From Lytechinus pictus (taxonomy: Eukaryota): a DNA stretch of 64,000 nt. The translations under genes and the position numbers were made by a program. The notes under the pieces are model-generated. The model made no database searches, was not told the DNA's origin, and worked only from the letters and a program-made list of their open reading frames with translations. Below, one piece after another: positions 38,296-64,000 of the stretch (position 1 is the stretch's first letter; every line of letters begins with the position of its first letter). The stretch lies in NCBI RefSeq assembly GCF_037042905.1, contig NC_087247.1, positions 44,516,001 to 44,580,000 on the forward strand, read 5' to 3'.

Positions 38296-38394
38296 CCAAT
38301 GGTAATGTCAGATTCTAATGTATCTGCGCATGCGCGCTTGCCAGTGACATATCATTGACTACTCTACAAACTTGACCCGACGAGGTCATGACCT
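38296..38394. promoter_or_regulatory. Motif cluster: CCAAT, NRF1-type palindrome, nuclear-receptor palindrome
   Basis: gCCAAT (about 38296), TGCGCATGCGC (38325-38335), and TGACCC-gacg-AGGTCATGACCT (38373-38394). Confidence 0.3.
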
Positions 38395-39255: not shown

Positions 39256-40442
39256 CACAATATATGATCTTATTGTTTTAGAATGAATATCATGACTTAA
39301 ATTCAGATTTTGTCTACAAATTAAAGGTTAGTAGACATGCTGTGAGCTCTTACCATGAAGTGCTTCCACTGCAACTTAATTTTGACTGCGAAGCTTATAT
39401 TATTTTTAGAAAAGGGGGTTTAACGTAGTCAAACCATATTTTTTCCATGAAGCAAACCTCTATAAAACTATAACAAAAAATCTATATCTATACATCTCCT
39501 GTTTTTTAAATGAAATAGCCCCAATAAATCGTACTCATTACATAAAATATTAATGGACATTTTCATCTTTTAGAGAGGACATCCTAGAATGAAGAAGCAG
39601 TAAGCGGTAATTCATTGTACTTTGGCTGCCTCCGCTGGCAGCCAGTGACTCGTCTTGATTGAAGGGGCGGATTTAAATAGCAAACAACAATGTTTAACGA
39701 ACAATGGTTGAACTACGTGAACATGATGTTCTAATTGTAATCGACATCCCAGTCAGAGTTCAAAAGAGAAGTGAGAGTTACGCTGCTGAGGTGCCAAAAA
39801 TAAATGCATTTAGTTTATTTTCCTCTTTTTCCATAGTGAGGGGAATTATGGTATCAAACAACATTATCCAAAATGCAGTTGATCTTATTTTGGGATTTTG
39901 GCGAGCGAACTTGTTGATAATGATGTGCCAATTAATAATACACACACGAACTTTGTTTAAATAATAATGATAATCAGTTGAAAAAACACACGAATCAAAT
40001 CATTTAGGCCTAAGTGCTGATGCCCTAAAAAATCATTTAAATAAATATTCCGTCATTTCACTTTATAAATGGTTTTATAAATGCTACTACCTATCGATTG
40101 CAATCCATGAAATTAAACGTTGTAAAATCATTCTACCCGACATTGTAATACTTGACATAGAAATATCCCCGTATGCTACAGTCAATAATCAGCGATGCAC
40201 AACATATTCATAAGATAGACCTCGAAAATTCTTCCATGAACCTCCGAGTTTCCCGTAGCTGGGTCATTGAGACGACCCACTTGACCTACATCATGCCCAT
40301 TACAGCCCGCAAAACTTGACCGGTCAGTGTCGCCATAGTAAACATAAACAACATAAAAAATATTCAATTATGATTCACTAGTCATATTCATATTAAAGGG
40401 TTCTTGAGGCCTTGCCCCACATTTGAGTTTGCTTTGAGTTAA

Positions 40443-41040
40443 AGGACAAGTCCACCCCAACAAAAAACTTATTTGAATAAAAAGAGAAAAATCCAACAAG
40501 CATACCACTGAAAATTTCATCAAAATCGGATGTAAAATAAGAAAGTTATGACATTTTAAAGTTTTGCTTAATTTCACAAAACAGTTACATGTATATGCAC
40601 ATCCTGGCTGGTATGCAAATGAGGAGACTATGACGTCATCCACTCACTATTTTTTTTTTGTATTTTATTATATGAAATATGAAATATTCTAATTTTCTCT
40701 TCATTGTCAAGTGATACTACGATGAATGCAGCCCTGAACATGTGGAATTAGCATTGTTTAATAATATATGGTTCAGTCAAGTTGGTCCTTATTGTCAAAT
40801 CTATGAAAGATGAAATATTGTATAATTCAAACAATAAAAAAACAAAAGAAATAGTGAGTGATGGACATCATCGACTGACTCCCCTAGTTGTGCATATCAC
40901 TGTTTTGTAAAAAATAAGCGACTTTGAAATGTCATAACTTTCTTATTCTACATCCGATTTTGATGAAATTTTCAGCACTATGCTAGTTAGATTTTTCTCT
41001 ATTTATTCAAGTTAGCATTTTCCGGGGGTGGTTTTGACCT
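40443..41040 (-). mobile_element. Kolobok-type MITE (copy 2, inverted relative to 27184-27774)
   Basis: TTAA|aggacaagtccacc ... ggtggttttgacct|TTAA. It aligns along its length with copy 1 in reverse complement, and the ORF track gives near-identical pseudo-ORFs (27580+ and 40643-). Confidence 0.9.
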
Positions 41041-42349
41041 TTAAAGAGCTCACAAAACAGATGGTACAACATATAGTGGATCATGAGGAGATTAGTGTTT
41101 AAATTTGACAAACAATCATATGGGCCTAACCATGGTCATTAACACAATAAATTAATACACCACTACCCCTTTCAAAATAAAATAAACATTTAACGAAACA
41201 GTTTGAACCATAATATAACAGGATTGTATCTATACTGTAATCAACAGAGTTATTCTGATGTTCTGAGTAAGTACATGGCTGTTAAAGACTGCCTAATTTC
41301 ATACGTGTCAAGGAGCATCGTGGTACAGGGTCTACACATTTTTTGTTTTTTTGTGGGGTAATGATTGCTTTTATTCATCTGTCGTTTTACCATTTCCTGT
41401 CGATGTAGACATTATACTCATTCTCGACTATATGATTGTAAAATACATAAATCAGTATTCACAGCAAAAACCAAGTCTTCAAATCAAATGAAGAGGTTGT
41501 AAATAAGTGAGAGAAATATTGGGAGATTAATATATACATCCTGAATTAATATTCATTCATTCTGATAAACTTTTATCCTCTTCCATTTTCACAAAATATC
41601 ATTTTCAACATAAAATAGACGTATCCAGTATACAAGGTATACTGTAGCATGTATAAAAAACGGCTACTTGTGACTTTTGAATAGTAACAAATTAACATTC
41701 AATGTATGATCACAAATTCCAGCTGACATGGCTGATGCTGTTGAGTAATTTCATATCACACATTGGTTCTTTAATAAAATACAAAAAAAATATTGTCATT
41801 TCATTTTAATTTTTTGTTTCAATTCTGTCTTATTATCTCAGTGGTTTTGACGATTAGTACATGAGGTGGTGAAGAAATGTAAGAGTGAAACTTTTACTTT
41901 CAAAGAAAGTTTTAAAAAAAATTGTATATATATATATGTTTTCGAAATATTCCTCTGCATAAATTTGCAACGAATTTGATTAAATTACCTTTTAAAAGTA
42001 AAAAATAAAAGGGATGTTTTTCTATTCGATTCCAATATTATTTCATTTCACAATTCATAATAACGTTAATCATAAAATTTAAAACAACATTTTTTAAGTA
42101 TAATGCTGCCACTTGCATTATTTTATATTTATTCAGTTATCATGTCTCATATTAATTTTGATTACGAATCATTTTTCAAATTATTATCTAGAGTAAACAT
42201 ATAGTAATTATGCGAAATTACTTCTTATCTTGTGTGCAACAGGAAATTATGTTATCACAAAGATATATTTTCGAGGCTTTAGAATAAGAGACAATAAACA
42301 CAAAGTGGGAGATACTAAACATGGGAGACAAGACATGCACAGTTTTTAT

Positions 42350-43544
42350 CGTGTTTATGGCGGAATATAATTCATCACTGCACGATATAAAGATCTGGAA
42401 TAAATTATGATGATTTGTAATAACGACTGATTTAGGAGAAGGAGAGGGGTTAAAGTCGACTTCGAGGCAAACAACGCCGGGCTTATGTCAACGACATTAA
42501 TAAAAAAGGGCCGATTTTTTTTCTCGCATTTTAACCCCCTTCTGGAAGGGTCGTGGTTTTTCGTTTTTCTTCTTTTTTTTTTGCAATGCGGGTGAACATA
42601 CAAAAGTAAACGCAAACGCTTGAAGGGGGGGGGGGCTTTCATGATATCCCCCTCTCACTCACATCTCTCCCCTTCTATCCGCCTCTCTCTCTCTATATAT
42701 ATTGACGTACATTTTTTTTGTTTCTCTCATACACCACACCCAAATCCCTTCATCTCCGTCTCACCCGTTCCATCTGCCCCAAAACTGTGTTCCCATCCCT
42801 CTTCCTTTGTCATCCTCCTCTCTCTCCCCGCCCCTCCCTTTCACTCTCCCTCTCATCCACCTCCCTGTTATAAAATATCATTCAAAACAATGGTCATTTT
42901 TTTTCCTCATGTCCCCTCTTGCTCTCTCTGTTTGTTTCCATTTCTGGACCGTGGCTTAGACCCTTCCCCTTTACCATAAACTGTATAGACCGCCAACACA
43001 TTCGTGCTCTATGCACATGTTGCCCGTCTTAAGGCCTCCCATTCCGTCATTAATTCAAACCTGGTTGTCGAGGGTAAGTCATGATACAGTCTACTTCGAG
43101 AGACCATCCCAATCTTCCGAACATTGCCAAAGTCCTGAGAACATTGCATTTGGCGTCTGCTGCAACGTTATATGTTTTCAAGAGAAATTAGCGCGCCATT
43201 AATTGCAACACCTGGTGACGTACAGAGTGCGTTGTAAAGAGCTCTCTTTTGGGTTAATATTTAACCAAACAATTTCTATTAGCAGTTTCTGCTGAAGTGA
43301 GGGTGTATGTTTTCTCTTTATTTATGACGGCGCACTTGAAGATAAGGCTGAAACTGGCACGAGAAACTTAGTGGGAGAGAGACGAGGCGCCGTAACAGGG
43401 TCAAGATCACTCGACTAGCTGAGGTCCGCATGCAAGAGACGTGATTGTCTGTGAGCTGCACCTCCAAGAAAACGCGGGAAAGTTAGTGCCGAAATGACAC
43501 GAGAGGAGACATCTGTCCTAAGAGAGGCTTATCTACAGGTAGGT
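42350..43544 (+). promoter_or_regulatory. Candidate promoter and first non-coding exon ending at a splice donor
   Basis: Repeat-free and CpG-containing, with a long CT-rich tract (about 42645-42970). Motifs: TTTATGG (42354-42360), CCATAAA (42974-42980), TTTATGAC (43321-43328), TGACGT. A purine-rich segment ends in CAG|GTAGGT (donor after 43538). Confidence 0.4.
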
Positions 43545-46500
43545 CTTGGAAAACCTCCCCAATAATTTACAATATTATTTTATTCCACAGATATTAAGAT
43601 AATTTTTTGAATTCGTATTAAATGTAGTAATTTAGGCTCTCCCAAGTATATTTATTCTGGCGTTAAAAAATATTCCAATATTTTTGTCTATGACCATGAC
43701 TTATTTTTGTTATTAATAACTTTTTAGGCTTCGCACTTCCCATCAAACTTTTGCTTATAATCCTATTTTCCTGATGTTTTTCCCCTCTGATCCACCCCTC
43801 ATCTGTCAACTGAACGCCTCTAAAAGGCCATGGGCACACTATACATCACCATGCGGTAACAAGTATTCCAGCTATGCTCTGTGATCCCCTGTGGAAAATA
43901 AGACCCGTCGTATAATCTCTACCAGCGCGGCCTCTGCCCCGGTGATCATGATCATGGCCATGGTATAGGGGCCTATGATCACCTCAGTGACGACCTTTCT
44001 CTCTCTCCCTCTCTCTCTCTGTCTTTATTTCTTTTCATCTGTCATCAAATTAGTTCGTTTCTTTTACCGTGACCCTATAAGAAGCTTCCCAGGTTCAATT
44101 CGAGTAAGACCTGTTTAGATTTCTCGTATATAAGAAATGCATATGTATAAGATGATGCCATATCGTCTTTAAACTCCATTAGCGTTACACGGTGTATTTC
44201 AGTTCCTCTCTTTGTATTTTACACCTTATTTTGTTTGTAGTTTTCGACAAGAGAAAAGCTCTGCATTGCAAGTTGTGGCAAAACTAATAACTGCATTGTT
44301 TTAGAAACATAATTATGGACCAAGACATTTACTTTTTAGAACCATTAAGAACTGCACTTCTAAGAAAAGATGCGGGAGCGGGGACTTTTAAGAAACGAAA
44401 TGATAATTATTATTAACAAATTAATGTTTTAAGTATCCCTATGTTGGTTCTCAAATTTTATCTGTCTCCAAAATTGTCTGTATCCCTTGTGATTATATCG
44501 TGAACGTACATGCTTGTAATTCATATGACATTGCAAACTTTAAAAAAGTGATTTACCAAGGTCTGCTCTCTATCACGAAGCTTGAGTTCAAATATGAATC
44601 CAAGGGGTATGAATGCATTTAATTGTGTACCTTTATGTACCGTGCTAGGAAGATCCAAATTTGAACGTTATAATCGTAAAATGTTATCGTTACTTTGCAA
44701 GATGCAACTTTACACTTTGATTTAGGGAGTAATCTTACAACCTATGAGGTGCTGCTATAGTGTTTCAGTTTCATGGTACGAACCTGTATCTTTATCATGT
44801 CTATCCCTTGTAGTTGAGCAAAAGTTAAAACTCAGTAGGATGTGTATGAAAAATGGTACAGACACAAGCTTGCAAGCACTCCAACAAAAAGTCAGTTAGG
44901 TCGGTCAATGGTTTTCCATTTAAAAAATGTATAAAAATCGTTGGGTTCAGTCATGTAAGTGTTTCGAAAGACATTATTAACAATCTGTAAAAATAGATAT
45001 TAAATGATAGCAAGACTTGCAAATGCTCCTATACTTTTTTAAATTCATGTTCAATTTAAGGAAAATAAAATACCGTTCACTAAATACTGCGAAATTTGCG
45101 AATAAGTGTTTAACAATAACGCTGATATTATTGTGGCTGACGTTGATGCGGATAAAAGGGAATGGGTGAATATTTGCCATCTGCACTGATAGAGCTAAAG
45201 GCGTACAATAAATTGTATTGTATAAACAGGGAATAATTTCCGGTGTGAAGATACAATTATATCTACCGTTATACAGATGGAGTTAGAGAGTGAAAAAAAA
45301 GATCAACATGAAACTAGAAAATATATATTGTGATGCCCAAATTGGCAAAATACATCATTTAACATAACTATTATTGCTGTAGCTGATAGCAATGGTTTAT
45401 TAATAAGTAAAAGTGCTGTTTTTCTTTCAAAATACAATCTTGCCCAACATTTTCACGGCATAGGAACAAGTATTGGAGTCCACTCATCAGCTCATTTCTT
45501 GGTAAGTATATAAAGGTAGGGCATATACTTTCAATTATAGATAGAAATAGAGCAATCTTCTCTCGTACTAAGTAGCCCCGTAAGTAGCGTAGAGACAGTA
45601 CGCCAGACGGTGGCCTGTACTTATAGAGAAGAAGAAGAAGAAGATATAAAAACATGCCATGTGGATCTATTATCTACCATCAGCCATCTTTGTTCATCAT
45701 AATTTCGTCATATCTTAGATTACTCATAATAATAATAATATTGCCCCGCTACTACAAGTCCAACGCACAAAGGAACCTAATACATGTAAAACATGGGGCG
45801 TTTCCCTGTACATGACCGCTACCCGTGCGTGGTGTGAGCTCTGTGCCTGTGCGATGCCAAGTCCTACATCTGGCCAACCATCGAGGGCTTACGTTCCTTC
45901 TCTCCCGGGAGTACTCGGGCGATCACGTTCGTTAGATGATGGCGGATAAAGTTCTACACTGTATAGGGTTCAGTGGAAAGGGCTTGCTAGATGGAACGAC
46001 ACGGAGCTATATTTTGTAACATGATGTTTTTTTTTTGGGGGGGGGGCGAAGGTCCAGATCATTAAGTAATGACAATAATTTATGTGTACATTGCACATTA
46101 ATTTTTATCAATGGCCTAGTACAACACAATTTGAAGAGAGAGGATTATTTAGCCGAGTATTGATGCATCTATTACACTATATGGACAACATAATATAACC
46201 ACATAAATATATTTAAGAGGACCGTTCATTATTATATCGAAAAACATACAGCTTCGATATTGTTTCATAAGTATATTGTGTGGAATCAGGATTTTTGCCA
46301 TTCCTAGGCCTACTAGTCGATGTTTTCTTTTAAACACATTTCACCGTTAATGCTGACCAGTCGAATTCCTACATTAAATAAACACGTATATCAATGCTGA
46401 CCATAATAAACTGATAGAAACGATGCTCTATGGGCTATAATAATTTGATGATTACATTAAAAGTTATTTATTTGTCTAATCCAATGCAATAATCATTTTC

Positions 46501-46822
46501 TTATGGTTACACAGCGCTGCACATTTATTTGTTTTTGTGGGTAACATGTTTTATTAGTATTTTTGTCAACTCTAGCTCATTTATTGTGCGAACTGTGCTC
46601 TCACCTTTGACCAATTTCATAAGTTTAACACATCTCTCGTAAATATATTGATTTTATTTGATGTCGTTTCATTTAACAGAAAATGAAAAATAATTTTCCA
46701 ACCCTAGCAATACCTGGGACTTTTCACTTATTGGTGTTGTAAAATTATGTAATTATGTGATTTGTCTTGCCCATTTATTAGGCAAAAATAAATAAGTTTA
46801 CTAATTATAATCATCTGTTAGC

Positions 46823-47092
46823 CAGTGACATAATGAGCCAAAAATTTCGAGGGGGCTAAATACGGCGTAGCGGGCAAAACTTATAAAAAGCGGCGGGCGG
46901 GAGAGCAAAAATTTCGATGTTTTTTATTTAAAAATCAATTTTGTGATAGATTTTGACATAAAATTCATAAAATAATAACACATTTCACTCTTATCTCTTT
47001 AATTTTCTTTCCTTTTCTCTCATTTTTTTTCTTGGTCGTTATTATTTGTTTTTTTTTTGGGGGGGGGCAAGCACCCCATCCGTACGCCACTG
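46823..47092. mobile_element. hAT-type MITE
   Basis: Termini cagtgacata / tacgccactg and a degenerate 8-bp TSD ctgttagc / cttttatc (6/8). Same family as the element starting at 63968. Confidence 0.65.
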
Positions 47093-49658
47093 CTTTTATC
47101 GACTGCATATTAATGGATTATCGGTTCCGTATGAGTTGAGGTAGCCATAGATAGGAACACATTCTTCTATCTTTGGTATAGGACGCTTATCATGTATGGT
47201 GGGATATGATAGGTTAGTCCATAATAGTGCTGCATTTCTAACATGTTAATTACACAAATAATTTCATCCTAGGTGTATATACATCTCTCTTTCATCATCT
47301 CTTTCATCTATGTCATGCATTCTTTGTGGCCGTGGTTAAATAAATTATTTGTGATTTGGGAGATCGTTTACCATACAACATGTATGGTTTTCGGTTCTTC
47401 GAAATGATTAGTTCAATACTTAACATCAATTCTGAATTTATTATGTACACTATCATTATATTGAAAGTTGTAGACCTAACAAAATTGAAAAAAGGCAATT
47501 TCAAACATCAAACAATATCCAATAAAGTTATTAGTAGAATGCCACGTGATTTTTATAAAGCTGAATGCAAAAAGACGTAGCAAACAGCCGCTTTAAGCCG
47601 AGTAATCATGTGATATTTATGACAGATCGTGCTTTATGATTGCAAAATCATAAAACTCTGGGCGTTAACGCTCGTTTTTCTATAATACGCACGAGTATAC
47701 TATGGCCAATAAAATATCGTTCTAGTACACACCCGACTAGACTATAAATCTCCTTATAGTTGGCCTACCCCCCCCCCCCCCCTTCCCCTTGTTTCAGATA
47801 TACTAAATTTATTTTGCCTTTATGCGCATTTTAGACCCGTGATGGTGGTCCAAAGAAAGCAAACACCGAAACAAACTGAAGTAAAACACAGAACGAGAGT
47901 AAATTTAAAGAAGACAACCCAACCATATATACAAAAGGTCAGTTCGATCTATTTTGCTACAATCTGCGCAGCTTCGCCCCCTTCATTTTCATGATTTCCC
48001 TCACTATTTTACCTAAGAGAATACCTACATGTATAAAAACCACTTATTTCTTGATTTATGATTAGCTATGGAAGCGAAAGAATGGTCGGTATTTGTCAGG
48101 ATGTAATTTTGCGTATAACATTTCATAGTTACACGGTTACACGTAACCGCCGCTGTATGTTTGGGGTTTCACTCTTCACAAATCAACAGTATGCAGAATG
48201 TAATATTGTTTTATGCATTTTGTTTACTTTAACCAGATCATACGCCTTTTCGTTTCTTAACAAACCTGAGGTTGTTCAGCCATCTTTCTTTCATCCCCTT
48301 GCTATATTCGCCATCTTTTTTAACTAAAGAAACCTAATACATTTTGCAGCCACACTCTTGTAACAATGGAGGCCATTTTCGATGTTCATGACGAATAAGA
48401 AAAAAAAAGTTTTGATGAAGAATATGATTGAAGAGGGTCCAAACGTTACCCAAGGGTATGATAAATCTAGGACTCTCCTGCCGACATCGTTAATCATCAC
48501 CAAGTTCATTTGCTATAGGGCCAAGGATGTTGTACACCAGTCATTATACTCCTTTCACTGCCGGGGTGTATATCTACACTATTTTTCTACAGGATCCTGA
48601 AAGGGGGAGGCTGTTATGAATACAGATGCAAATACCTTTGTTGAAAATCTACAACAAAAATATTGACCATGTTGACAGAGAAACATATAAAGATCTTGCA
48701 AGTTCAAAGGATTTTTATTTTTGTTGCTTTATGGTTACATATTGCAACGGGATGGAGGAAACTGTTGTTGAAGATTTACATCTAGATCTCCAAGGACATA
48801 TTTCTGGCAATTTAGGTAAAGAATCTCATCTGATTTTTACATCCACTGGTTCCATTACATTAAAAATGCTATAAATATGGAGGATTTATATATAGATATG
48901 TACATGTATTTTTTATTACACAATTGCAAGCGCCTATTCAAATATACGGCCATAATCATTTCGATTCGCTCTCCCTGATAACACATACACCATACGACTT
49001 CTTTACTCTTTTCCTTTTCAACCCCGCTCGAAAATCGCCTCGAATTTGCATTTTTCTTTTGTTGTCATATTTATTTACAATGAAAGTGTTATTGTCGAGC
49101 ATTGTCGTTTCAATTAATTTTGATATAGCTTTCTATTTTGTTTATTTTTCTTGAAATATTACGAGTGTTTTATCTTTATTTTGTGTACATATACTCTCTT
49201 GACAAGCTTGACGAAATAAAGGCATTACATACTCAGATCGATATTGAATTTGATATCATAGTCTGTTATGAAGTTGAAATTCTTTCTTAAAACAATTATT
49301 TCATTTTAAGGCTTATGATTATTCTTCTTACTGAAGTTTATAATATTTTCCATGCATAAGACAGTTTCAGACGATTATTTAATTTGAAAGTTTCAATGGT
49401 AAGAAGTAAACCCTTAAGCCCCATGTGTTAGATTTCTCATGTGCCTATCTCTCAGGTTTGTCCATTTTTTATGTACCCAGATGGTGCAAAGGGCGAAAGC
49501 TAAAAGGAAGAAGGGATCATGAGACTTCTTCTGACCGGAAAAAAAGCTTCAACTGTATTCGTCAAACATGTCAAGGTATACTATGATGGGTGTATATACT
49601 GTGATCAAATTATAACGGGCACATTATTTGAAACTGTCGAGTGATTTAAAACAATTAG

Positions 49659-49661
<3 letters not shown>

Positions 49662-49698
<37 letters not shown>

Positions 49699-49918
49699 AT
49701 AAAGAGGAAATGCATTCTACTAGTTCCAACAGAGTGTATTTCCAAGTCCAAATTTTCGCCGTAAATCCCACGTCTCCTTCAGGGATACAATAAAGCTCAC
49801 AATCCCTGGAGAAGACGTGGGATTTACGTCGAAAATTTGGACTTGGAAATAAACTCTGTTGGAACTAGTATAATGCATTACCTCTTTGCCTCTTTATAAC
49901 ACGCGAAATGTAATATCG

Positions 49919-49983
<65 letters not shown>
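49662..49983. mobile_element. Penelope-like element terminal remnant: 86-bp inverted repeat with degenerate hammerhead motifs between (TA)n tracts
   Basis: Arms 49701-49786 and 49802-49887 differ at 6 positions. The arm consensus atccCTGAAGAagacgtgggatttacgtcGAAAatttgga fits a minimal type I hammerhead. (TA)n lies on both sides. Confidence 0.65.
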
Positions 49984-51536
49984 AACAAGAACGAATTAAT
50001 TCAAATGATTGTGATGATAATAATAAAGGAGGGATTCTATCTGACGTGAGTTGACGTCAATGTGGTTTAGATTTAGGAAAAAAAAGAAGAAAATTAGCTA
50101 TTAATGAAATGTTTTGCGAAAATGCTCCTTACAATAACATGTTACATTCATTTTTATTTTTATATTAATTTGTGATGTCACTTGTGAGCTTGCTATCCCA
50201 CATGTCATGCGATATAAAGATAAAAATGCCATTTCCTCAGAAAATTTGAATAATCTACATAGTATATCGGATACTTAGATCAAGAACTTATGGTAAAGTG
50301 AATTTATGGAATTTCATATAAGGGGTTTGTTGCACGGAACGTAAAGTCACTAAACAAAAAAAATGTAAATTTGGTATTCTTTGTTCGACTCTGTTCAAAC
50401 TTTTTAAAATTTCTTCCTAATCTCTGCCTCTCTAAAATCTACTTGATTCATAAGGTGACCCCCCCCCCCCTCTTTTAGATGTAGACAGCTGCATGTATAC
50501 TTAAATATGGATCTATTTCCTATGTCATATTGTTTGGTGGTTCTATAGTTCAAACATCTTAAGCTGGTTATGTGTTTTAGATAAACATTTCGATTTATTT
50601 CAAAAGTGATAAAAATGATGAAAAGGGATTTCAAACCTTATTCTTTCCTTTTTTCTTACAATAGAATATTGTGTGCTGAATGTAAATTAGGTCTCCTGTA
50701 ATATTTGTAATTGATATCATTTACCTTTCAGTAATTTGTAGGGCTGCAAATTTTGTACAAATCACTGACACAGGGCCAATGAAATTGAGATTTTAATTCA
50801 TTTCGTCCACTGGCTCGGATTATTGTAATATATAGGTCACCTATTAAACATGTCAAAAGTGGATGTTTTGAATCTCAATGCAATATTTTTAGAATGTTCT
50901 GCAAGGCATTAATAGAAGAAGGTAAAAAAAGGAATGAAAATGTCAAAAGGTCAAGTCAAATATGAAAAAAATTAAGGAAATTTATTAATATGTATCAATA
51001 AATAAATAGAGAACTAATCAACTGAATGTATTGATGACGAATTGTAGTAAAAAAAAAATGGAACTTTGACGGATGCAAATCCGTTACTATTATTTGACAA
51101 GCCTATATAGAGGCATGGATTAATAGAAGGTAATGCATGCCTGTCAAGGATCAGAGCTCTACACTGTGACAAGATAGGGGCGCTCTGGGGGGGGAGGCTA
51201 TGGATCCCCAAAACGTAATAGTAATAATGATGATGATTGTGATAATAGTAATGAATATATTAACAATAATTAAAAAATCTCAACCAAGACAAAAAGACAA
51301 TTAAATGTGATGAAATAAGATATCATGTAATGAATATTATGTGAAAATGTATCACGAACTTATATTTTTTATCAAAAAGGTCAAAACGTTTGCTCGATCG
51401 CTTCGCTCACTCGCTCGCAGCTTTGAATAAATTCTGCCCCATACGCCATTTCTGGCCCCCCTCAAAATGTGCTGGAGCTCTGTATCCACTTGATCTACAG
51501 GCAGATCTCAAACAAACACTTTGTCTACATTAAAGT

Positions 51537-51899
51537 TGGTATTTACTGTTTGGTCCAATCATCGTTTGGTCTTATGCTCACTTGGTCTAAATGTCATTAC
51601 ATCTTATGCCCAGATGGTCAAAATTCCACTTCTACTTTGCACTTTGTCAAATAAAAAATTAGTTAAAAAACAGCTGATCTAATCATAATAGACAAGTGAT
51701 GTTAGACCAAGTGCATATTATATGAAATTTGTAGCATATCATATAGACGTCCCATATAGACTAGCTACGTGAAAATTAGACAAAGTGGTAAATCGATAGA
51801 CCAAATGGTAAGTAGACCAACTGGCTGCAGACGAACTAGAATCATACCATGTTGGATGAGACTATAGACCAAGTGACACTTGACCGGTCGGGATATACC
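51537..51899. mobile_element. Degenerate GACCAA-type foldback element
   Basis: ttggtc units (about 51550-51600) face tagaccaa/agacgaa units (about 51690-51890). It ends ggatatacc. Confidence 0.5.
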
Positions 51900-52983
51900 G
51901 CCCTGGCCCCCGAGTCTTATACAGCATCGGTTTATCAGATGTGCTTGTATATAACTGTATCTTATCCTAGCTGCGCCGCCAGGGTCTCGCATAACCCTTC
52001 ACTGCGAGTTTCCAACCATAACTTTCTTCAGGCTTCACTTATCGTATGAAGTCGTTCTCTGACTGGTATGCACATTGAGTGAATGTCTGAGGATTTGGTT
52101 TGTATTCCCAGTAGATAGGTCTTGAGTGTCGGTCTTGAACTCTTTAACCATAGGGTAGAATGAGAGAGAGAGGTGTGTGTCGGATTATCATATCTCTCTG
52201 AACATTGCTTGTCAAGTGCCATCGGGTCTAAATCGGGGGTGGAGTCAGGTAAGGGCTAGACGAGTGGGGGCATTAGAGCCCCTTTCCCTCCCTCTTGTAA
52301 AAAAATATGTTGAGGACCTCAAAGAAAGTCCCCCCCCCCCCCCTCACCTGGAAGCGTTATAACTTTCTTTTTTTCAATTGATCTCGTGTCATAATTTCTT
52401 TCAGAAATAAGTTCCAGATCATCCCTGACCAATAAGTTATATATGATTATTACTACATTTCTGAGGTGAAGTCTTATCCAAGCACACTGCTATGCTTAAC
52501 AGCAAATACGGGTTTGAAATCCATAAAACTATATTGTTTATACCACATGAACAAGAATAAGAGGGGGCGAGGTTATGCTGTGTATCGCTAACTAATTTCA
52601 TGTCATAAGTGAATTTGAATTTCAAATAGAATGAATCTCATTTAGTGCTAGAAAGTCGAAAGTAACAATAGTTCAAAAATAGACAGTATGAAAGTAAAGT
52701 TCTCAAGCTGTTCTCTTTGTTTTTTTTTAACAGATTTATTGAGATTCTAAAAATATTAACAATGCAAGAGACAAACCACTTCCCAAAATAGTGATGAAAT
52801 GCCAAAATAAACTGAAATCTTACAAAACTTTAAATGCAATAGACATAAAAAGCACTGTGGTAAAACTTGAAGCACTGTACTGTATGGGTATGTTATTGGT
52901 AACTGTACTCCCGAGCATTGTACCACGTTTCCTGTAAGGTACTTAAATCCATTTAGGTCATAAGCCAGGTGAAGTTCGCAAAG

Positions 52984-52990
52984 TATAAAT
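52984..52990 (+). promoter_or_regulatory. Candidate TATA box upstream of mir-10
   Basis: TATAAAT at the start of a CpG-richer island about 520 bp upstream of the hairpin. It is preceded by AGGTCA/AGGTGA half-sites (52955-52972) and followed by AACATGGC (YY1-like). Confidence 0.3.
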
Positions 52991-53498
52991 CCCGCGCAAA
53001 CATGGCAAATATGACCGTGAAGTGAAGAGAGGTGCAAAAATTGAAAGGTGAATACTGCAGGCTGACGAACACTATACCAACGCCTTGTTGGACAAGCTCT
53101 CTACAACTGAAAACAACACAAGCAGAGAGTATGATTACCAAGGGGGGATTCGAGGGGAGGCTGGAATTTGTTCTCCTCCTGCCTCAAGCCGACCCGCGAG
53201 ATTTAAGAAGATCGGAGAGGTCAGCTTAAACTTTTCTTAAGATCTCGTCTTTAAGCGGTGTCGTCTGCACAGCCAACATTCCCCATAGCAAGTCATGCAG
53301 CGCGCTCCGGTCCAGTTTAGTCCTACACTTTCTCTGTGTGCTGCCGTCGTACTTGCGTGCGCGCCTGATGGTGCATCGAACGCAGACATCAGCTGTTTGG
53401 AGGATTGCTCAGGAAAAGTGGCATGGAACCGGCCCTCCTTGAAAATTTTCCTTGGCAAATATTTCGGTCTTCAAAACATGGATTCGACTAAATAATTT

Positions 53499-53594
53499 CT
53501 TGGGCTTACATCAACCCTGTAGATCCGAATTTGTGTCCGAGTTTCTCGCCTCTGGAAGTCACAGATTCGGGTCTCTGGGTAACTGTATCCCAGG
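53499..53594 (+). ncRNA. mir-10: microRNA mir-10 precursor; mature 5p AACCCUGUAGAUCCGAAUUUGUG at 53513-53535, star arm at about 53560-53582
   Basis: Positions 2-23 are identical to the canonical miR-10 sequence ACCCUGUAGAUCCGAAUUUGUG. The 5p arm pairs with cacagattcgggtctctgggtaa, whose ACAGAUUCG start matches vertebrate miR-10b-3p. The lower stem is tggg..taca / tgta.ccca. There is an apical UGU motif and a CNNC motif (CAAC 53600-53603) about 17 nt downstream of the 3p end. Confidence 0.97.
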
Positions 53595-56500
53595 GTTAAC
53601 AACGGCAGACTAACGATGCTCACAATGCCTACGGGAGACCTACACCCATTTTCCTGGTCATGCTGGTGGCAGCCATCTTGGAATTATTTTCTCCTTCCAT
53701 ATTTTACCATCATCTCAATTGTGTAAGTCCACTCATTCAGCTTGAATATCAAATATTTTATTTGAAAGAAAGTTCAAGCAAGTAGAAAATATGATTTGGT
53801 TCTTTAAGGTAAAAATATTTCATATTTTATTGTATGATAATAAAAATTAAATATTGGATGTTATAATCTGGCTGTCACTTGACGAATTAACGATTAGTCT
53901 ATGCTGTTTATTACAATCATATATTAATTTCAAGTTTTCCATTACCCATTGCTGTGTATTATTTTTTAAAGATTCTGTGACCAAGATATCTGGTATTGTT
54001 GTTTAGCGTAAGCTTGTTCATTCGCGGAAATATCATAATCTACTCTATCCATTTCAATGCATTATTAACACACTATATTTCGTTGGTTCATATTTGTTTC
54101 ACATTCTATGCCTTGCCAAGATCATTGTTCTGTGAGCTCCTGCTCGTTGTGCTCACATACTTATTTTAATGTGGCGTTTAATGCATTATCAATACTGATG
54201 TGATGCATGGAGATGGATCACTAATTTACATGCATTTGCCCCCGCCCCCCGTACTGAAAAAAAATATATTCATCAAGTCTTTTAATTTCATTTAAATCTA
54301 AATGTAATACAAAGTCATATAATTGAAATATAAATAAACTGATGAACATTAGGTTGCCAATATTGAAAGAGAATGAAAGGGCACGCTTTATTATATTCGC
54401 ACATGCATTATTAAACGGAATTATCACATGAAAAGTGCTTTCCGGTTATCCAAAGCGGAATAAAGATATATTTCATTTTATTCGTTATGAATGTGAAATG
54501 CAACCCCGAAATAAAGCAATCAATAGCTTTGACAGAACGCAAATAAAACACGGTTTTCTTCTCAAATATTTGTCCGAAGTCAAATATGTGCATCGCCCGG
54601 CATAATGGGTACGCTAGAACTACATTCTAGGAGTGAAACCGTTAAGATATGCTTGGATCAAGCATATTTGAAGCATGATTCATTATGGCATAGCCTACGT
54701 ATGCCATATTGGGGTTTAACAGTATGTAGAATAAATCCTGCATTCGTTACTTTCTTCATTATATTATGTTTATAGGATATTATCGTGCATTATCTTTCTG
54801 TTTATTATTGAGCTAACTATCCACAATATATTTGAAGGACATGTGCAATTTTGTTTTAATACTTTTGCAGTAATACTCGCACACAACACAAACTGTATTC
54901 TGCATGGCTTTGAGAAGATGAATAGTAATTTCGAAATGCACATTCGTTTTACAAATTCTTAGAATATCCTTTAAGTACGGTCATCATCGTTTCAATTCCT
55001 TTATTGTACTATGATATTCATTTTTCCAACCAATTTGATATGCAGTTTTCTTCATTGAATTACTGATCTTATAGGAAAAAAATGTTGATGAACATACTTC
55101 TCGATTGATTTCTTTGAAGCCATCTAAAGTATTGGTAAATGCTCAATAATGTAAATTATAGGCAGTATCGCAATCCCATAAAGGTGTAGTGGCTGGGAAT
55201 TTATTTTTCATCCGTTGATTGTTTTCAGAAAATTGAATTTTGTATTTTAATATCCAGTGCCCTCTCTCGGTAATGTATTTTTGCATTATTTTCAACAAAG
55301 GACCCTCTAAAAAACTTATCTTACAAATTAAGTGATTGGGCTTCAGAAAGCTTTATATCTGACAAATATTTTATCCTAAACTTTTTAGCTGAATATCAAT
55401 ATCAAAGGAAGCAATATTTTCATATTGGTTAGCATTCAAACCAAATAAATGTCCTATAGAGCCACTAAAATAATTACAGTTTACGGATATTCACTTAAAA
55501 ACATAAACTGAAACAGCGACATATTTTTTGGCCGGGGATTCACCAAAACTGAAGGATATAAAAAAAGATAGCATTACCCTTCAACTTCCGTGAAATTAAT
55601 ATGTTTTTATACATTGATATCTCGGTCTATTTGACAATGAACGAAGGCTCAGTTCTTGACGGATGAATAATACAATGCTTAATAAAAAAATTGACATATT
55701 TTCATGAATTCGTGTAAATGCTGGTACAATATGAAGATTAATCTGTGAAAGACGAAAGGATTATAAAAGTCTCTGCAATTATTTAGCAACATTTTTAAAG
55801 TCAGAAAAATAGTCTAAACATATAAGTTCATCTTTACCAAACTTTATATAAATGTTTTAATCATCAGAAATACTTTTTTAATTCATGAATTTTTAAGTAT
55901 TGATCACAATGATATGCACTGAAAACAAAATAATTACACTTTTATTTCAAGATTAAATAATATTTACAAAAAGCACGACGATAACTGTAATAATAATCGG
56001 TCTACTTAAACATATTCTTTATGGCTGTAGAAAGAGGACTAAACTGAAGCAATTTTTTATGAAATGTGATCATTAACATTGCAATAAATCTAGAAAGAAA
56101 GGACAACGGTTTACAAAAGAGTATAAACGCATCTGAGTCTATCAATAAAGCAGGCCTACATAGTTAACATAGGCCTATGTTGTGTAAAGAAAATGTTTAC
56201 TTGCGCCAAAATGCTATGCTTTACAACCGACGAATACAAATCTTTAAAGGTGTTTGGAATAACCAAAAGTTGAAGTGAAGGCCTAACTAATTAAGTTCCC
56301 ACTTTATGTTTTAAAGGGATTATTTAAACCAAAGAGATGTAATAATCATCACTAGTAATACAAGAACATGTATAAAGGTTAAAATGTTGTTTCGATAGCT
56401 CGAATATACATTATGAGTAAAGTTCAATCAAGAGTATCTCTTGTCTTTATGATAATAAACCACAACAGCGATATCCTACTCCTTTTTTTCTGGTTTCTCT

Positions 56501-58815
56501 TTTTTGTCTTCCCATGCGTCTCTTTTAAAATCCCAGTCATCGGATTTCCTTTCATATACCAAGAACTGTCTGTTGAATTTTGTCATGTTAAAACATATCG
56601 GTATATATGATTTTATAAGTCACATGTATACTATCATTCAAGTGTTTTAATTATTTCCTGTAGGCATGATAGGTGAATATGAATATATATAATTATTATG
56701 TCCAGTTCTAAAGTAATACACGAATCCATATAGGCCTCGCAAATGTCTCGAGAACAGAAGACCAAAGCTTGGGATTTTTATTCAAAGAAACCAATATTGC
56801 TTAGGCTATAAGGTCGATTCACCTGTTCGTTATTCGCGCCATAAGTGTCATCATAATCGAGGGAGGAATTAATTAATACACTATAGATTCGGAAGGAAAG
56901 AATTTACGTAGTTACTGATGTATTTTTTCTTTCTCTTATAAAATTGTATCTATAGTTCTGTATCAAAAAATCAAGCAATCATAATCGATCAAACAATACG
57001 GCTTGTTCGTGCAATTATCAGTCTGTCCAGATCTACACATGATTACAGTCCAAGAATGAACCGACCTATATTCGATACCAACAGACACTGCTTGGTCAAG
57101 GGGAGCTCATTATGTGCGTTCACCTCCCGTGTAAACCATGAGTAAGGTGACCGCTGGAGATGCGCACGCATCTTCACCATGTTCACGTGATGACCTTGCG
57201 ATGTCGCATCTTGCCCAAATCTCACTTGCAGTCACATCTCGTGCGAATATCGTAAGCCTTGCCCATGTTGTACAAAGTGTCGATAATGCAAATTATTCGT
57301 TATTTCCTCATTTTAATCGGTTATGGATGTATTTCTATGCCCTAGAATTATTTTCAATACTACTTAAATTATATAATTTTTAATCGTAATTTGTTTCTTT
57401 CGTATCACGGCAGTTTCATTACTTGCAAGGCGTATATGTTGCCTAAAATATTTGCAATATGATGTCGTCACCCTCGACCCTTGCTATCACAATTCATCTG
57501 ACGCGCATGGTGTATAGAGAGTAAATTTCGTTAGTACTCTGTTAATGATTGGGTTTCGTTGTTGTGAAAGAATGAAGGATTGATGTGTAGAAGAAAATTA
57601 AGTACATTATTATTCAGAAGTTGTAGACGAAAACTTGTATAAGATTATACTTCTCCACAGAATAGTCACCATGAAAAACTGCATTTACCATAGGAACTGA
57701 TCAGGTATTGTTCGAACTTTAAACATAATGTTAACGATTTACATTTACACTGCTCAATTTGCAAAAAGAAATGTATCAATTTTACTGCTTAGCTTTTTAA
57801 AACATTATGTTTAAACTATCTTTACATACTTAAAGAACAGCAGTAAGTTCATAATTATAGTAAAACGGGTTCATTAAACTTATCAATAATGATTAACTTA
57901 CTTTTTAAATTGCACACACATGGTATTTGTGTGTACAACAAACTTGCATTGCAACAGACAAATTGCAGATCTACAATATTTTATCTGTATTGTAATGCAT
58001 CAGGTTGTATTATGAGGAACAAACAAGCACAAATGCAAAATGATAAACCACCTCCAAACAAATTAATAAATAAATGAGTACAAATCACATTGAAAAAGTA
58101 ATATTGCTAACAACCACAATAAAAACTTTGGCGACGTGGCCTACGTGTATATTTTTTTCATTTGGATTTCTGGCAAGGGAATACTATATCATAAAATTAT
58201 ATATCAGCGGCATTTTTGCTTTCTCAGCGAGATTTTTTAAATTATATATTTCATTTTTCATTTAAACCAAGTTGTACATTGTGTGACTTTCGTTTTGATT
58301 TTCAAAGAGTTCCTCTCATCATAGCTATTATCAAAGTTTAATGATGCGCTTATAAACTGCATTCCATAAAATGATCATTGTCTGTTTACTTACCCCATAT
58401 CACGACTATACATAAAGTAAATATCATTCGTTTTATGATTTAAAACATTACGACTGAACTTGGAATATCACGATTGTTTCAGGGGTTTATGGAAACGAAA
58501 AGGGGAGGATTGTTTGAGTTGAGATTACAGCCTATAATAAATTACTTTTATCAATATCATCTTTCCTGTATGTTACATACTTGAAATGAACTCTTTCGAT
58601 TGAAGCTGGCGTTGGTTTGGTGTTTAATGATTAACTTTGTTAGCATAGTAAGTGTGATAAATGTGTTGCAACTGCATGCCTAATATTGCTTTATGATAAT
58701 GTTTATTACCAGGAAAACCGCTCATTTCTCTTCTCCCTTATGATAGTTGAGGTAATTACATAAAGTTTTCAAGAAGAAAATGTATATATGGGAATAGAAC
58801 AATATTAACACTTAA

Positions 58816-59110
58816 AGGGGAAGTTCACCCTGATGAATGTTTATCGTAAAAATAGAACAACAAAAATATTGGTGAAGATTTGAGGAAATTCTAAAGATTT
58901 AGAAGGTTATTATAATTGTAATATTTGTATTTGTGACGTCATATGCGAGCAGCTTACCATGAATCGAGAATTAAAAATATCAGTGAATAGTCATTTTCTC
59001 AAAAAGTTGAAAATGGGTTTTATTGTACCTTTAATACATCAACGTACAAATTATTTCACACCCGCCCCCTAAAATAAGAAAATTTTCAGTCATCAAGAAC
59101 CATAAAAGAC
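58816..59110. mobile_element. Partial Kolobok-type MITE (left end only)
   Basis: TTAA|aggggaagttcaccctga, followed by ggtgaagatttgaggaaa and gtgacgtcatatgcgagc. No matching right TIR was found. Confidence 0.55.
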
Positions 59111-60139
59111 AATTATTCTCTTGTATTTGCCTGTCTCAACAGAGTAATTATGCTAAAGACTCAGAAATGGGCAATCCTTTCGATTGTTTTATCTATTCAA
59201 CATATTTGCAATTCATTTTGTTTATTTAAGCTGATGCCATCTATGTTATTAATTTATGTTACATATATTTATGTATTGTGTTTTTTAATAATCGGAAAAT
59301 AAATAAACAAACAAACAAGCGAACCCTCCCTCTCTCACTTTTACCCTTCTATGTCTCTCCTTGTTTCCCCAATTGTCTCTCTTCTCCCCCTATCTCTATT
59401 TCTCTCGCTCTCTCTCTCATATTCACACTCTCTCTCACTCTTATTTACGTTATTTCTCGTCTTTATTTTCATCCCTTGTTTTTTCTTAATAACTCCGTTT
59501 CATTTTTTGATCTCTATTATGTCCTTTGATCATTGTGAAATATTGAAATATAGAGAACATTCAATGATTCTTCTCGTATAATCCAAAACATGATGTAAAC
59601 GCTGTTACTGAAACTTATTATTGTTCATTCAAGATATTATGTATATGATCATATCAACAAGGAACTATTTTATATTTCATTTAATAAAACACAGAAAATA
59701 GTGAGTATTTGACATTATCCACTTCTATTTTTCGACGTATTCTTCTCCTTAACGTTTTCTTTGCACAATTCTACATTTCTAATTATCTATTTCAAATTCC
59801 AGCGAGACAAGGGTCAACCAAAAGCATTTTGGTAGGTTTGGCGCCACTAATTTCGCAACTAGAGCTTTGTTTTGTTTTATTTCTTACGAGTGCTGGATGG
59901 GCTATTGAAGTTAATATTTGAAAGATGAAAGGTACAACAGCAGAAAGTGGCATGTGAGTGTACCAGGCATGAAGGAGTAAAGGGGAGGGCAATAATTCGT
60001 ATAGGTTCTTTTGAGATTGTCTTTCTTCAGATTGTTGCTATGACTGGTCTTTCGCGGAAACAATGCCTGATTTTAGATGAAGTTATTCACGTAGTTTCCC
60101 TAGCAGGTCAGAATTCTCATCAGCATCGACAGGAGATCA

Positions 60140-60300
60140 AATAATATTAATAACAAAACATAGGGTTTATATAGCGTCTTTCCCATTTTGATTAAATGCT
60201 CAGGGCGCTTAGAAAAGAGAAGAAAAAAAAGTAAAGAGAACTTAGAGAAGTATAGATGTCTACATTACAAATGAGGAAGAAATGTCTGTCTTCAAACCTG
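60140..60300 (-). mobile_element. L2-type 3' tail remnant
   Basis: tttatatagcg...gctcagggcgct is the reverse complement of the L2 tail stem-loop. Upstream on the minus strand is ttgaagacagacatttc (LKT..., like the LKThLF terminus). Confidence 0.5.
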
Positions 60301-61425
60301 GTACCTGCTGGTGAACAAATGCAATTTTATGTTGCCCTTAAAGGATGTTGCCGAGTTTGAGTTTGAACATCATGCGAATATCCTATTCTCATGATGGGGA
60401 ACTTCGGCAGCATTTTAGTAAAATCAGAAAACAGCATTAAACAGCAAATCTCATCTTGATTCTTGTTCAAAAAATATTTTCCCATTCAAAAACGATAAAT
60501 ATGCAATTCATGAAAATAATTGAAAGTAGTTATACATTAGATGTACAGGCATATCATTTTATTGACCTTTTTAAACCAAATAAAAAGTATTGTAATGTAA
60601 AGAACAATCATTTTATATGCTCTCACATTTATTGTCTTGTATACTTAATATAATTTAACCACCCCCCCCCCCCCCCAAAAAAAAAGTCCTACTAAGTCAT
60701 GTGATATGGAAATCCTTTGCACTTCCCCAGTTTGAATAGCTGAAATAATGACTACATTCGATAGTATTTCAGACGGTATTTCACGAACTAGAATAGATAA
60801 AAGGTAAGAATCATTTGATCCATATGGACTTGTTCTCTGCAAAGCAACATTTGATAACCCCTTTGCCCCTTTCTTTATAGAGCAGCCCCTGCCCATTAAA
60901 ATAAGAAAAATAGTTCGTAAAACGCTGGTATCGCTGAATATATAGGGCAGAGATGGGATGGAGTGACAAGTGTTTATAAATATCCGCATCAAACTCGCAA
61001 ATATCCCATGGCAACAGCGATGTCTTGGCTCTGCTTATTATCGATGCCTTTTACATCTCATAAGAAATTATTACTTCAATTCAGCCTCAAGTTCGGAAAA
61101 TTTATTAAAGGTAGGTATTCTAGAGTCATTTCAATCACATTTTATATATGTATTTCTTAAAAAAAGATAAACATTCAATCTGTGATTAATTTCTATCTAT
61201 ATTTTTTTAAATATTGTCTGTTGTAAGAAATGTGCCATATGTATCTATTATTATATTGTAATCATTTTAAGAGAATGAAAATTGAATTACTGATACTGAT
61301 AAATCATTTTTGAATAATTTGTTGAAAAGGGAAGAATCAACTTTGTTGAAAAAAATAGCTTGGCTTAGGGAGGGGGTATGTCATTATCCGGCTATAAAAT
61401 AATTTTAAAAATCGAGAAATATTAA

Positions 61426-62007
61426 AGGTCAATTCACTCAAGAAAAATTTTGATTTTAACCAACATAGAAAAATAAAAAAAAACAAAATAACGCTGAAAA
61501 TGTTATCAAATTCAGTTGTAAAATAAGTAAGTTACGACATTTTAAAGGTTTGCTTATTTTTCACAAAATATTTTTATGCACAACTGAGTGATATGCAAAT
61601 GAGAGAGTTGATGATGTCCCTCACTATTTTTGTTTTTATTGTTTCAATTATCTAATATTTCATATTTTACAGATTTGAGAATAATGACCAACTTCACTGA
61701 ACCACAAAAGTATAAAAAAAAGGTAATGCCTCATGTTCAGAGAGGAATTAATCTTTGTTTATATATGACGATGAGGAGAAAATTGAAATTATTTCATATC
61801 TAATATAATGAAATACAAGAGAAATTGTGAGTGGGTGACATCATCAGCCCTCTCATTTGCATACCGGCCAGGATGTGCATATCACTGTTTTGTGAAATTA
61901 AACGAAACTTGAAAATGTCTTAACTTTCTTATTTCACCTCCGATTTTAATAAAATTTTCAGTGTTATGCTTGTTTAAATCAAACGTTCTCTTTGGGTGGA
62001 CTTGTCC
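61426..62007 (+). mobile_element. Kolobok-type MITE (copy 3, more diverged)
   Basis: TTAA|aggtcaattcactc ... gggtggacttgtcc|TTAA, collinear with 27184-27774. Confidence 0.85.
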
Positions 62008-63967
62008 TTAACGAGAAATAATTTAAAAAGTTCACAATGATACATCTTGCCTGAGGGTACCTTGTGGGGAAACTGCATGGATGGACACACCGATCCCATT
62101 TATACCAGAATAATTATTTATGAAATGATTTTACCGTTATAGAGACGTTGTAGACTGCTCTTTCTCTACCTGCCTTCATTTCGGCGAAGTGTTGTTCCAT
62201 CTTGTATTACATAGCTTTTACAAATGGTCGTCAAAGAAGGTACGTGTGGCTACCGTCTGTAAATGAAAGGGCTTAAATGGGAGTAGAAAGAAACGATCCT
62301 AAATTTATACAATAAGACATGACTCAATTTTTTAAATTTTTTTTATCGAGTAAGCAATTATATGTTCTCATCCATTTTTCCCCAGATTTTAACTTCCAAA
62401 TAATCAATGAACACGATGACGTGGCCTTCTTGATTTTTTTTTAAGTGATGTGATAACTCGAAACTATGAAAGTAGTTCCAGGTTTCATGGTTCTTTTTAT
62501 ATGAGATTATTGATAAGATTATGATAGACTCTAACGTTTGATAATGGAACCCTCTCACAAAATAATGTCTTTTAAGAAACTGTTTACACTTATTGCTCAT
62601 CGATTTCATTTTTTAACCAATGAATTAATGAATTTGTTTTTAGGTTAAAACGTTTCTACTTTAAAGGATATGAATTTTATTCAAAAGAAGGGGATTGTGT
62701 CATATAATTATTGTATATATCCCATTCGATACATTAAAACAAGAAATAATGTCCATGCCAGCTAGGTCTCTCACCCCTTGTCAAAATAACATGGCAATAA
62801 TTATTGGGAATAATTATTCAATATCTACCCTCACATTTGAATAGTATAATGCTCTTCGCTTCGTGAATTTGGAGGGAAATCTCACATCCCTCTCATGAAT
62901 AAGGAAAAAATATATACCAAAAGGCCAAATCCAGCACTTTAACAATGAGGTTATTCTAGTGAAAGAGAAAAGCCTAACGCTCAAAGTATCGTCGTCATGA
63001 TCAGTATGATCGTTTAGAAGAAGAGGCTTTATATTGTAAATGTTGAAAGCATCCTGTACACGTTTGTTTCCTGGCAACATCATCATAATGTAGGTAACAT
63101 TGTGGGTAAATTGTTATTGCACTGCACAAGACAACATTGCATTCTGGGTAAGGAACCGGGAGCTATACTCGGGTGCTTCATGATTCAAGGTGATGATATT
63201 CATTGTTAGTTCTGTTCATTTACCTTTAAGTGGTTTTCAGTTGTTTTTGGAAGTATATAATATGTTGTTTTGAGTAAAGAGTTCCATGATTTTGAACAAG
63301 ATATATTCTAAAGTTTATGTGGCTTTTGTGTAAGTTCGGTTTTGGTACTGCCTCAGTAAGTGAGTGAGGATGATTCCATTTTTTAATGATTTCTTCCCGT
63401 GACGTGCTTTTTTAATCAAGGTGCAATAAGGTTCCCTAGCACTCAATGTTCTTGATGGATCTTAGAAGGAGGCCAAGCGCTGTCGATGTGCAATCATTTA
63501 TAAAATGTTATCTGATATGTGATGCTCTGCTCCGAGTCTCAACGAGCTTCATGTTTATATTGAGAGTGATATCATGTGATAGTGCAGACGTCATTTATAT
63601 TATTGGCTGCAACGTGTAATGTGAAACAGCTGAGAAGGGTGGGTATGGGAGTGTGTGAGGGATATTTTAAGTGGGTTTAATTTACACTGGTAACCGAGGA
63701 CGTATAGTTCACATTTAAACCGAGGACACAGCGCACCGAGAGTAGAGGTAGTCCTCGGATGTATGTGCGAGATCGTTTGTATGTGATGGTTTACATGGTT
63801 TATGTGAAGATGGAAGTGCCTGTATGGACCTGCAATCACGGACCATTTTTATGTTCTAACCCACTAACTGACCGGCGACGTGAGACACCCAAGAACTGGG
63901 AACTTACCAGGTCCAGATAGACATACCAAGTAATTCCTCAACACATATGAAACCAGTTTTTATAGTC

Positions 63968-64000
63968 CAGTGGCGTAATAAGCAAAATATTTCGAGGGGG
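63968..64000. mobile_element. Left end of a hAT-type MITE truncated by the window edge
   Basis: cagtggcgtaataagcaaaatatttcgaggggg resembles the start of 46823-47092. Confidence 0.55.

Follow-up and report, generated by a model that had tools for sequence, protein, structure and literature searches.

A single-copy mir-10 in Lytechinus pictus, between Hox11/13c and Hox3 of an echinoid-type Hox cluster

The microRNA gene mir-10 shares the transcriptional orientation of its Hox neighbours. In most bilaterians it is positioned between the orthologues of Hox4 and Hox5 (PMC3290615). The cluster of sea urchins has been explained by an inversion of Hox1-5 and a subsequent translocation, in which Hox1-4 were moved to the posterior end and Hox4 was lost (PMC3707753, citing Freeman et al. 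2012). That of Strongylocentrotus purpuratus (Cameron et al. 2006, via PMC3707753 and PMC5638244) comprises eleven genes, with Hox1-3 beside Hox11/13c and no Hox4, all of which is also true of L. pictus, although the distance from the Hox5 homeobox to Hox1 is about 677 kb in the latter, compared with the 588 kb reported for S. purpuratus.

The window studied here is a 64,000-nucleotide stretch of L. pictus DNA, C3:44516001-44580000 (C3 denoting the contig from which it was taken). As in the canonical arrangement between Hox5 and Hox4, its mir-10 is linked to Hox genes, with the anterior members of the cluster downstream of it in the same orientation. By contrast, the downstream gene is Hox3, at a distance of 50.5 kb, and the upstream neighbour is not Hox5 but Hox11/13c, placed head-to-head. 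The persistence of mir-10 beyond the disappearance of a Hox neighbour recalls zebrafish HoxDb, of which mir-10d alone is left (PMC3707753); however, a duplicated cluster was in that case stripped of every Hox gene, whereas L. pictus lacks only Hox4, and from a single cluster. The interpretation very probably correct is that this is the orthologous mir-10 in an echinoid-type cluster, having moved with the anterior block of genes, with one break of the cluster between Hox5 and mir-10 and the deletion of Hox4 from the gap that now separates mir-10 from Hox3.

The mir-10 microRNA, the urchin gene order and the loss of Hox4 are all published already. The location of mir-10 on the urchin map is surely visible in genome browsers. 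No placement of mir-10 on a sea urchin Hox map was found in the full texts searched, which included neither Freeman et al. 2012 nor the L. pictus genome paper, such that a prior mention is possible. These results solidly confirm, and modestly refine, an accepted picture that they leave unchanged; the refinement is that mir-10 serves as a clean landmark of a breakpoint inside a particularly well-known 'broken' Hox cluster.

Gene order around mir-10

The cluster was mapped through a PF00046 homeodomain scan of the whole genome, after which the homeoboxes were translated. Twelve were found in the part of C3 from 44.06 to 44.80 Mb; these are listed below by homeobox start on C3, with the basis of each name, alongside mir-10.

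44062252 (+): Hox5, by protein matches
44108803 (-): Hox6, by signature and position
44170730 (-): Hox7, by signature and position
44210537 (-): Hox8, by signature and position
44251216 (-): Hox9/10, by signature and position
44312376 (-): Hox11/13a, by signature and position
44420008 (+): Hox11/13b, by the Peronella homeodomain
44485793 (-): Hox11/13c, via Diadema protein P0123
44569506 (+): mir-10, by Rfam RF00104
44632614 (+): Hox3, by Peronella Hox3
44651135 (+): Hox2, by signature and position
44737911 (+): Hox1, by best PDB match, HOXB1
44803254 (+): Evx, by best PDB match, Even-skipped

The names of Hox2 and of Hox6 to Hox11/13a are based on homeodomain signatures and position only. Hox5 groups with proteins recorded as 'Hox-A5-like' in L. 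pictus, L. variegatus and S. purpuratus and is 82% identical to a crinoid 'Hox5', while the homeodomain of Hox11/13b has few differences from that of Peronella Hox11/13b; for Hox1 and Evx, the best matches among solved structures are those given above. The resulting order, Hox5(+), Hox6-7-8-9/10-11/13a(-), Hox11/13b(+), Hox11/13c(-), mir-10(+), Hox3-2-1(+), Evx(+), is of the echinoid type, in which Hox5-6-7-8-9/10-11/13a-b-c precede Hox3-2-1, and agrees with the suggestion of an earlier note on this DNA, made from the sequence alone, that the window belongs to a rearranged echinoid cluster with a displaced Hox1-3, here found beside Hox11/13c. Within it, mir-10 is located inside the Hox cluster, co-oriented and on the Hox4 side, with Hox4 absent and Hox5 moved away to the opposite end, approximately 507 kb distant. 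Evx is found 65 kb beyond Hox1.

The upstream neighbour of mir-10 is only just excluded from the window. A 207-codon open frame at C3:44513551-44514171 (-) corresponds to exon 1 of Hox11/13c, the start codon of which (C3 44514162) is 1,839 bp to the left of window position 1 and 55.3 kb from mir-10, in divergent orientation; the statement in the earlier note that 53 kb of upstream sequence contained no Hox gene was accurate by this margin of 1.84 kb. The homeobox exon is at C3:44485793-44485930, and the last exon a further 2.5 kb on. Exon 1 and the homeobox are joined in a 298-residue model from Diadema antillarum, protein P0123, for which the best named full-length relatives are the 'Hox11/13c' proteins of the crinoids Metacrinus and Anneissia. 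The L. pictus RefSeq entry LOC129256286 (204 aa, 'uncharacterized') is 100% identical to the C3:44513551-44514171 frame, and consists of exon 1 alone, read on into the intron, with the homeobox exons 28 kb away left unjoined; the annotation of Hox11/13c has probably been split in this way.

The product of a different gene carries the label 'Hox11/13c' in Peronella; its L. pictus orthologue is at C1:14468761-14476653. The Peronella label has been recognised as a misidentification of Hox11/13d, a gene detached from the cluster (Szabó and Ferrier, PMC6307216). Two posterior Hox genes are found off-cluster in L. pictus: that at C1:14468761-14476653 is identified by sequence as Hox11/13d, via the Peronella orthologue re-identified in that study, and the divergent homeobox at C2:27344699-27344869 is probably Hox11/13e. 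The detachment of Hox11/13d and Hox11/13e matches the description in PMC6307216.

On the other side, mapping the L. pictus Hox3 protein placed exon 1, which includes a YPWM motif, at C3:44620064-44620501 and the homeobox-containing exon 2 at C3:44632329-44633018. The start codon, at C3:44620064, is 50.5 kb downstream of mir-10 and 40 kb past the end of the window. Among named proteins the closest is Peronella japonica 'Hox3', with 66% identity across 92% of the query, and the exon shares 99% identity with L. pictus 'Hox-B3-like'.

The same junction is present in Diadema antillarum, taken here to be a distantly related euechinoid. On its contig JBFRCO010000675.1, Hox11/13c (-) starts at 1,506,911 and Hox3 (+) at 1,627,900, again head-to-head, with a spacing between gene starts of 121 kb as against 105.9 kb in L. 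pictus. The rearranged boundary between Hox11/13c and Hox3 is hence common to another echinoid. In Rfam searches, no mir-10 was detected in the 10-kb flanks of Hox11/13c and Hox3 in Diadema, or of Hox5 in Anneissia, Antedon and Holothuria, these flanks being too short for the purpose. In Anneissia and Asterias, Hox4 separates Hox3 from the position expected of mir-10, for which reason their Hox3 loci were set aside. As mir-10 was not located in other echinoderms, its ancestral position within the phylum is taken from the literature.

By gene order, the junction between the posterior genes, Hox6 to Hox11/13c, and the displaced anterior set of mir-10, Hox3, Hox2 and Hox1 must fall within positions 1 to 53,505 of the window or in the 1.8 kb to its left. 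In this respect the earlier note was right to propose that the left part of the window holds or adjoins a rearrangement breakpoint, since the junction is between the 5' end of Hox11/13c and mir-10.

Absence of Hox4 and history of the cluster

The hairpin divides the window into two intervals:

1..53505 (no strand): non-coding spacer between the 5' end of Hox11/13c and mir-10, with no homeobox, YPWM motif or Pfam domain
53590..64000 (no strand): first 10.4 kb of the 50.5-kb interval from mir-10 to Hox3, corresponding to the position of Hox4 in unrearranged clusters, with no Hox4 remnant detectable by HMM or tblastn

Relics of Hox4 were sought in all six frames of the 154 kb spanning C3:44486001-44640000, using an HMM of nine cluster homeodomains, and tblastn with those nine plus six Hox4-type proteins. 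The sole match in either scan of this region was the Hox3 homeobox, and no Hox4 relic was found. Within the window, the same searches returned nothing better than an E value of about 1-2, and the genome-wide PF00046 scan placed no homeobox in C3:44516001-44580000. Over the 154 kb that run from Hox11/13c to Hox3, [YF]PWM occurs just once, in exon 1 of Hox3 and beyond the window. Two short similarities were judged to be due to chance: one of 19 residues at C3:44490273-44490329 (-), on the Hox11/13c side, with an E value of 0.022 from one of the nine queries, and one of 31 residues at window positions 52696-52770, with an E value of about 2.

The search was equally negative elsewhere in the genome. 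Among the 20 strongest off-cluster homeoboxes, which by signature comprise Xlox, Gbx, Msx, En and other classes, none has the group-4 signature; no extra Hox4-like locus was detected genome-wide, with Hox5 being the best match to a bat Hox-A4 query. There is no Hox4 in the assembly, nor in the interval between Hox11/13c and Hox3. The claims of the earlier note that neither strand of the window has a homeobox or YPWM-containing exon, and that the window represents an interval from which Hox4 was lost, are respectively confirmed and supported: mir-10 is followed downstream by Hox3, rather than by a Hox4 just past position 64000 or by genes unrelated to Hox, and Hox4 is nowhere in the assembly.

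While the gene order is directly observed, the history behind it has to be inferred. Hox5(+) is flipped against Hox6(-) on its own, which fits the inversion and translocation model of PMC3707753. The run of mir-10, Hox3, Hox2 and Hox1 is co-oriented, inverted relative to Hox6 to Hox11/13a, and situated between Hox11/13c and Evx. In this run mir-10 would retain its ancestral relation to the Hox4-3-2-1 genes, upstream of and co-oriented with them. Since its orientation, and the side on which it faces Hox3-2-1, are ancestral, mir-10 is likely to have travelled with the anterior block, to be inserted with it between Hox11/13c and Evx; and since it stayed with Hox3-2-1, one breakpoint of the rearrangement would have been between Hox5 and mir-10. 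Hox4 would have been deleted from the stretch that today forms the 50-kb gap between mir-10 and Hox3, leaving no recognisable coding remnant. As no such remnant was found, it is from gene order only that this gap would be recognised as the former place of Hox4, which is in this way delimited to 50 kb.

The point in this history at which Hox4 disappeared may be a different one. There is a little less than an even chance that the gene had been lost before the rearrangement, in the ancestor of urchins and sea cucumbers, in which case the 50-kb gap would be the old spacing from Hox5 through mir-10 to Hox3, carried along with the block rather than created by the breakage. In the sea cucumber A. japonicus, Hox4 and Hox6 are missing from a cluster that is not rearranged (PMC5638244), and as this cluster is ordered in spite of the absence of Hox4, the loss need not stem from the urchin rearrangement; the lack of any Hox4 remnant in L. 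pictus also fits an old loss. However, reviews link the loss of Hox4 to the rearrangement (PMC3707753), Li et al. describe the losses of Hox4 and Hox6 as lineage-specific (PMC7351957), and Hox4 could have been lost independently in urchins and sea cucumbers. Both the order of these events and the exact breakpoints are testable with the existing genomes of cidaroids, Diadema, holothurians and asteroids.

A further proposal, which at present appears rather unlikely, gives the position of mir-10 a functional consequence. As well as marking a breakpoint, with the junction confined to about 55 kb, mir-10 may have come under posterior Hox regulation with a change in its expression, because it is now head-to-head with Hox11/13c and no longer downstream of Hox5. 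If true, mir-10 would be a microRNA rewired by rearrangement of the cluster. L. pictus is genetically tractable, such that a role of mir-10, whether related to Hox genes or not, could be tested by knock-out.

It is improbable that Hox4 was never lost, but is represented by the urchin 'Hox6', from which mir-10 would have become separated. Zhang et al. (PMC5638244) described S. purpuratus Hox6 as highly similar to A. planci Hox4, and the L. pictus Hox6 homeodomain has a Hox4-like 'TRQQ' at positions 8-11. Nevertheless, the same homeodomain begins with the central-class 'GRQTYTR', where groups 4 and 5 have 'SRTAYTR'; the Hox-A4 query matched Hox5, Hox8 and Hox7 better than Hox6; and L. pictus Hox6 is found between Hox5 and Hox7, on the strand shared by Hox7 to Hox11/13a. 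An arrival of mir-10 by itself, through duplication or transposition independent of the Hox1-3 block, is more improbable still, given that this is the only mir-10 of the genome and has single-copy flanks, and that its strand, and the side of Hox3-2-1 on which it is found, correspond exactly to the ancestral arrangement (PMC3290615). Movement of mir-10 with the anterior block thus remains the preferred explanation.

The hairpin, its processing and its targets

The following features define the microRNA gene, in window coordinates:

53506..53589 (+): mir-10 precursor hairpin, by Rfam RF00104, with an outer stem reaching 53499-53594
53513..53535 (+): miR-10-5p mature strand, seed ACCCUGU, A at position 1; identical to spu-miR-10, with position and pairing taken from the fold
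53562..53583 (+): predicted miR-10-3p (star) strand, from the predicted fold with 2-nt 3' overhangs assumed
53600..53603 (+): CNNC motif (CAAC), read from the sequence, 17 nt past the predicted 3' Drosha cut

The CAAC is at an offset usual for the CNNC processing signal of animal pri-miRNAs, and by analogy would have this role. The only Rfam family detected in the 64-kb window is mir-10, with a single match at 53506-53589 (+) that extends over the full model (1-74) and scores 54.8 bits (E = 6.8e-11), above the RF00104 gathering score of 47.5 bits. For positions 53499-53594, the predicted fold is one long stem with an energy of -44.8 kcal/mol, compared with a mean of -24.4 kcal/mol for 200 dinucleotide shuffles, none of which was as good (z = -6.06). 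The apical loop is longer than in the RF00104 consensus, with 18 rather than 9 unaligned bases. The antisense strand (53505-53588) is also mir-10-like, at 34.2 bits and below the cut-off, as expected of a near-palindromic stem.

The 5p arm at 53513-53535 reads AACCCUGUAGAUCCGAAUUUGUG, all 23 bases of which match the spu-miR-10 23-mer printed in PMC6039759; an identical string is present in two small-RNA papers on Apostichopus japonicus. The mature strand is therefore the same as that of S. purpuratus spu-mir-10, including the A at position 1, which is outside the seed and unpaired in the fold. This identity means that the A is the known sea urchin form and no peculiarity of the locus.

The 501 bases spanning the hairpin occur once in the genome, making the sequence single-copy, and the genome-wide scan found one mir-10 above the cut-off, at the C3 locus. 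A weak match to the family at C8:32629072-32629145 (+), of 30.4 bits, was rejected as a second mir-10 because it carries the miR-125 mature sequence and is hence the mir-125 gene. Judged by its sequence, fold and copy number, the locus is a genuine single-copy L. pictus mir-10, representing known biology and no new kind of element. The earlier note had reported a complete miR-10 hairpin with A in place of U at mature position 1; the former is confirmed by the Rfam score, the z-score and the single copy, and the latter is correct, being the spu-miR-10 form.

Primary microRNA transcripts are rarely captured by polyA or cDNA libraries. In three RNA-seq runs labelled as L. pictus, all ordinary cDNA libraries of unspecified stage and tissue, 0-2 reads were found across window positions 50000-55999, with no splice junctions, lending no support to a polyA host transcript but not refuting one; one low-depth contig set, not recorded as RNA, spans the hairpin without differences. 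That the hairpin resembles mir-10 only by chance, or has decayed, and makes no microRNA is the least probable alternative of all, as the lack of reads in these three runs is of a kind common to pri-miRNAs and is set against 23 of 23 mature bases shared with spu-miR-10, which has been sequenced in other urchins, a score above the Rfam cut-off, intact pairing and a CNNC motif at the usual offset. The hairpin would instead be expected to yield a working miR-10, given that the mature strand is perfectly conserved and the precursor intact. By analogy with the rest of the family, mir-10 would be transcribed from the + strand and cut by Drosha, then by Dicer, releasing miR-10-5p (seed ACCCUGU), which would act as a post-transcriptional repressor.

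No 8mer or 7mer-m8 sites for miR-10 are found within 3 kb past the stop codons of the eleven clustered Hox genes and Evx. The weaker seed matches in the same scan, one 7mer-A1 located 2.9 kb past Hox7 together with six 6mers over a total of 36 kb, are approximately as many as expected by chance. Repression of the neighbouring Hox mRNAs by miR-10 is hence unsupported by a simple seed scan, there being no canonical site.

Repeats and other sequence in and around the window

The earlier note described the left part of the window as saturated with transposable elements. This part is not distinctive: a first-look count of repeat candidates gave 15,425 for positions 1-16000 and 14,268 for positions 48001-64000. 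No long transposable element reading frame is present in the window, with the ten longest open frames having no Pfam domain above the cut-off. Just three open frames reach at least 130 codons, all of them lacking a Pfam domain, and two of the three arise from translation of tandem repeats. Tandem repeats that look coding, but match nothing in Pfam, are present in 15449-17108, and a run of N is found at 21444-21576.

Three interspersed, non-coding repeats have many copies in the genome. These are found at 7986-8604 (about 620 bases at 85% identity), at 61421-61976 (about 555 bases at 82% identity) and at 15484-16200, the last being a foldback or tandem element, at 90% identity, with repeats from 15484 onward. 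Pairs of inverted termini of roughly 60 bases, about 400 bases apart, are observed at window positions 27253-27714, 40511-40971 and 61489-61630, with further pairs beyond the window at C3:44584313-44584774 and C3:44612145-44612612. These elements are 83-90% identical to one upstream of Diadema Hox11/13c, and in sequence look like a MITE-like foldback family common to distant urchins.

Some sequence outside the repeats is also similar between L. pictus and Diadema. The 117 bases at 5134-5250 are 73% identical (E = 1e-6) to Diadema DNA approximately 9.9 kb upstream of Hox11/13c, in a collinear position, and are possibly a conserved regulatory element of that gene. Other blocks conserved in Diadema are found upstream of and within Hox3, the strongest being C3:44625726-44625902, at 83% identity. 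The interval between mir-10 and Hox3 also contains two tRNA-like genes, at C3:44601530-44601601 (-) and C3:44602267-44602338 (+); one scores 54.8 bits in Rfam and is assigned the anticodon TCA ('SeC') by ARAGORN, while the other is a tRNA-Val(CAC). The pair may be either real tRNAs or tRNA-derived repeats.
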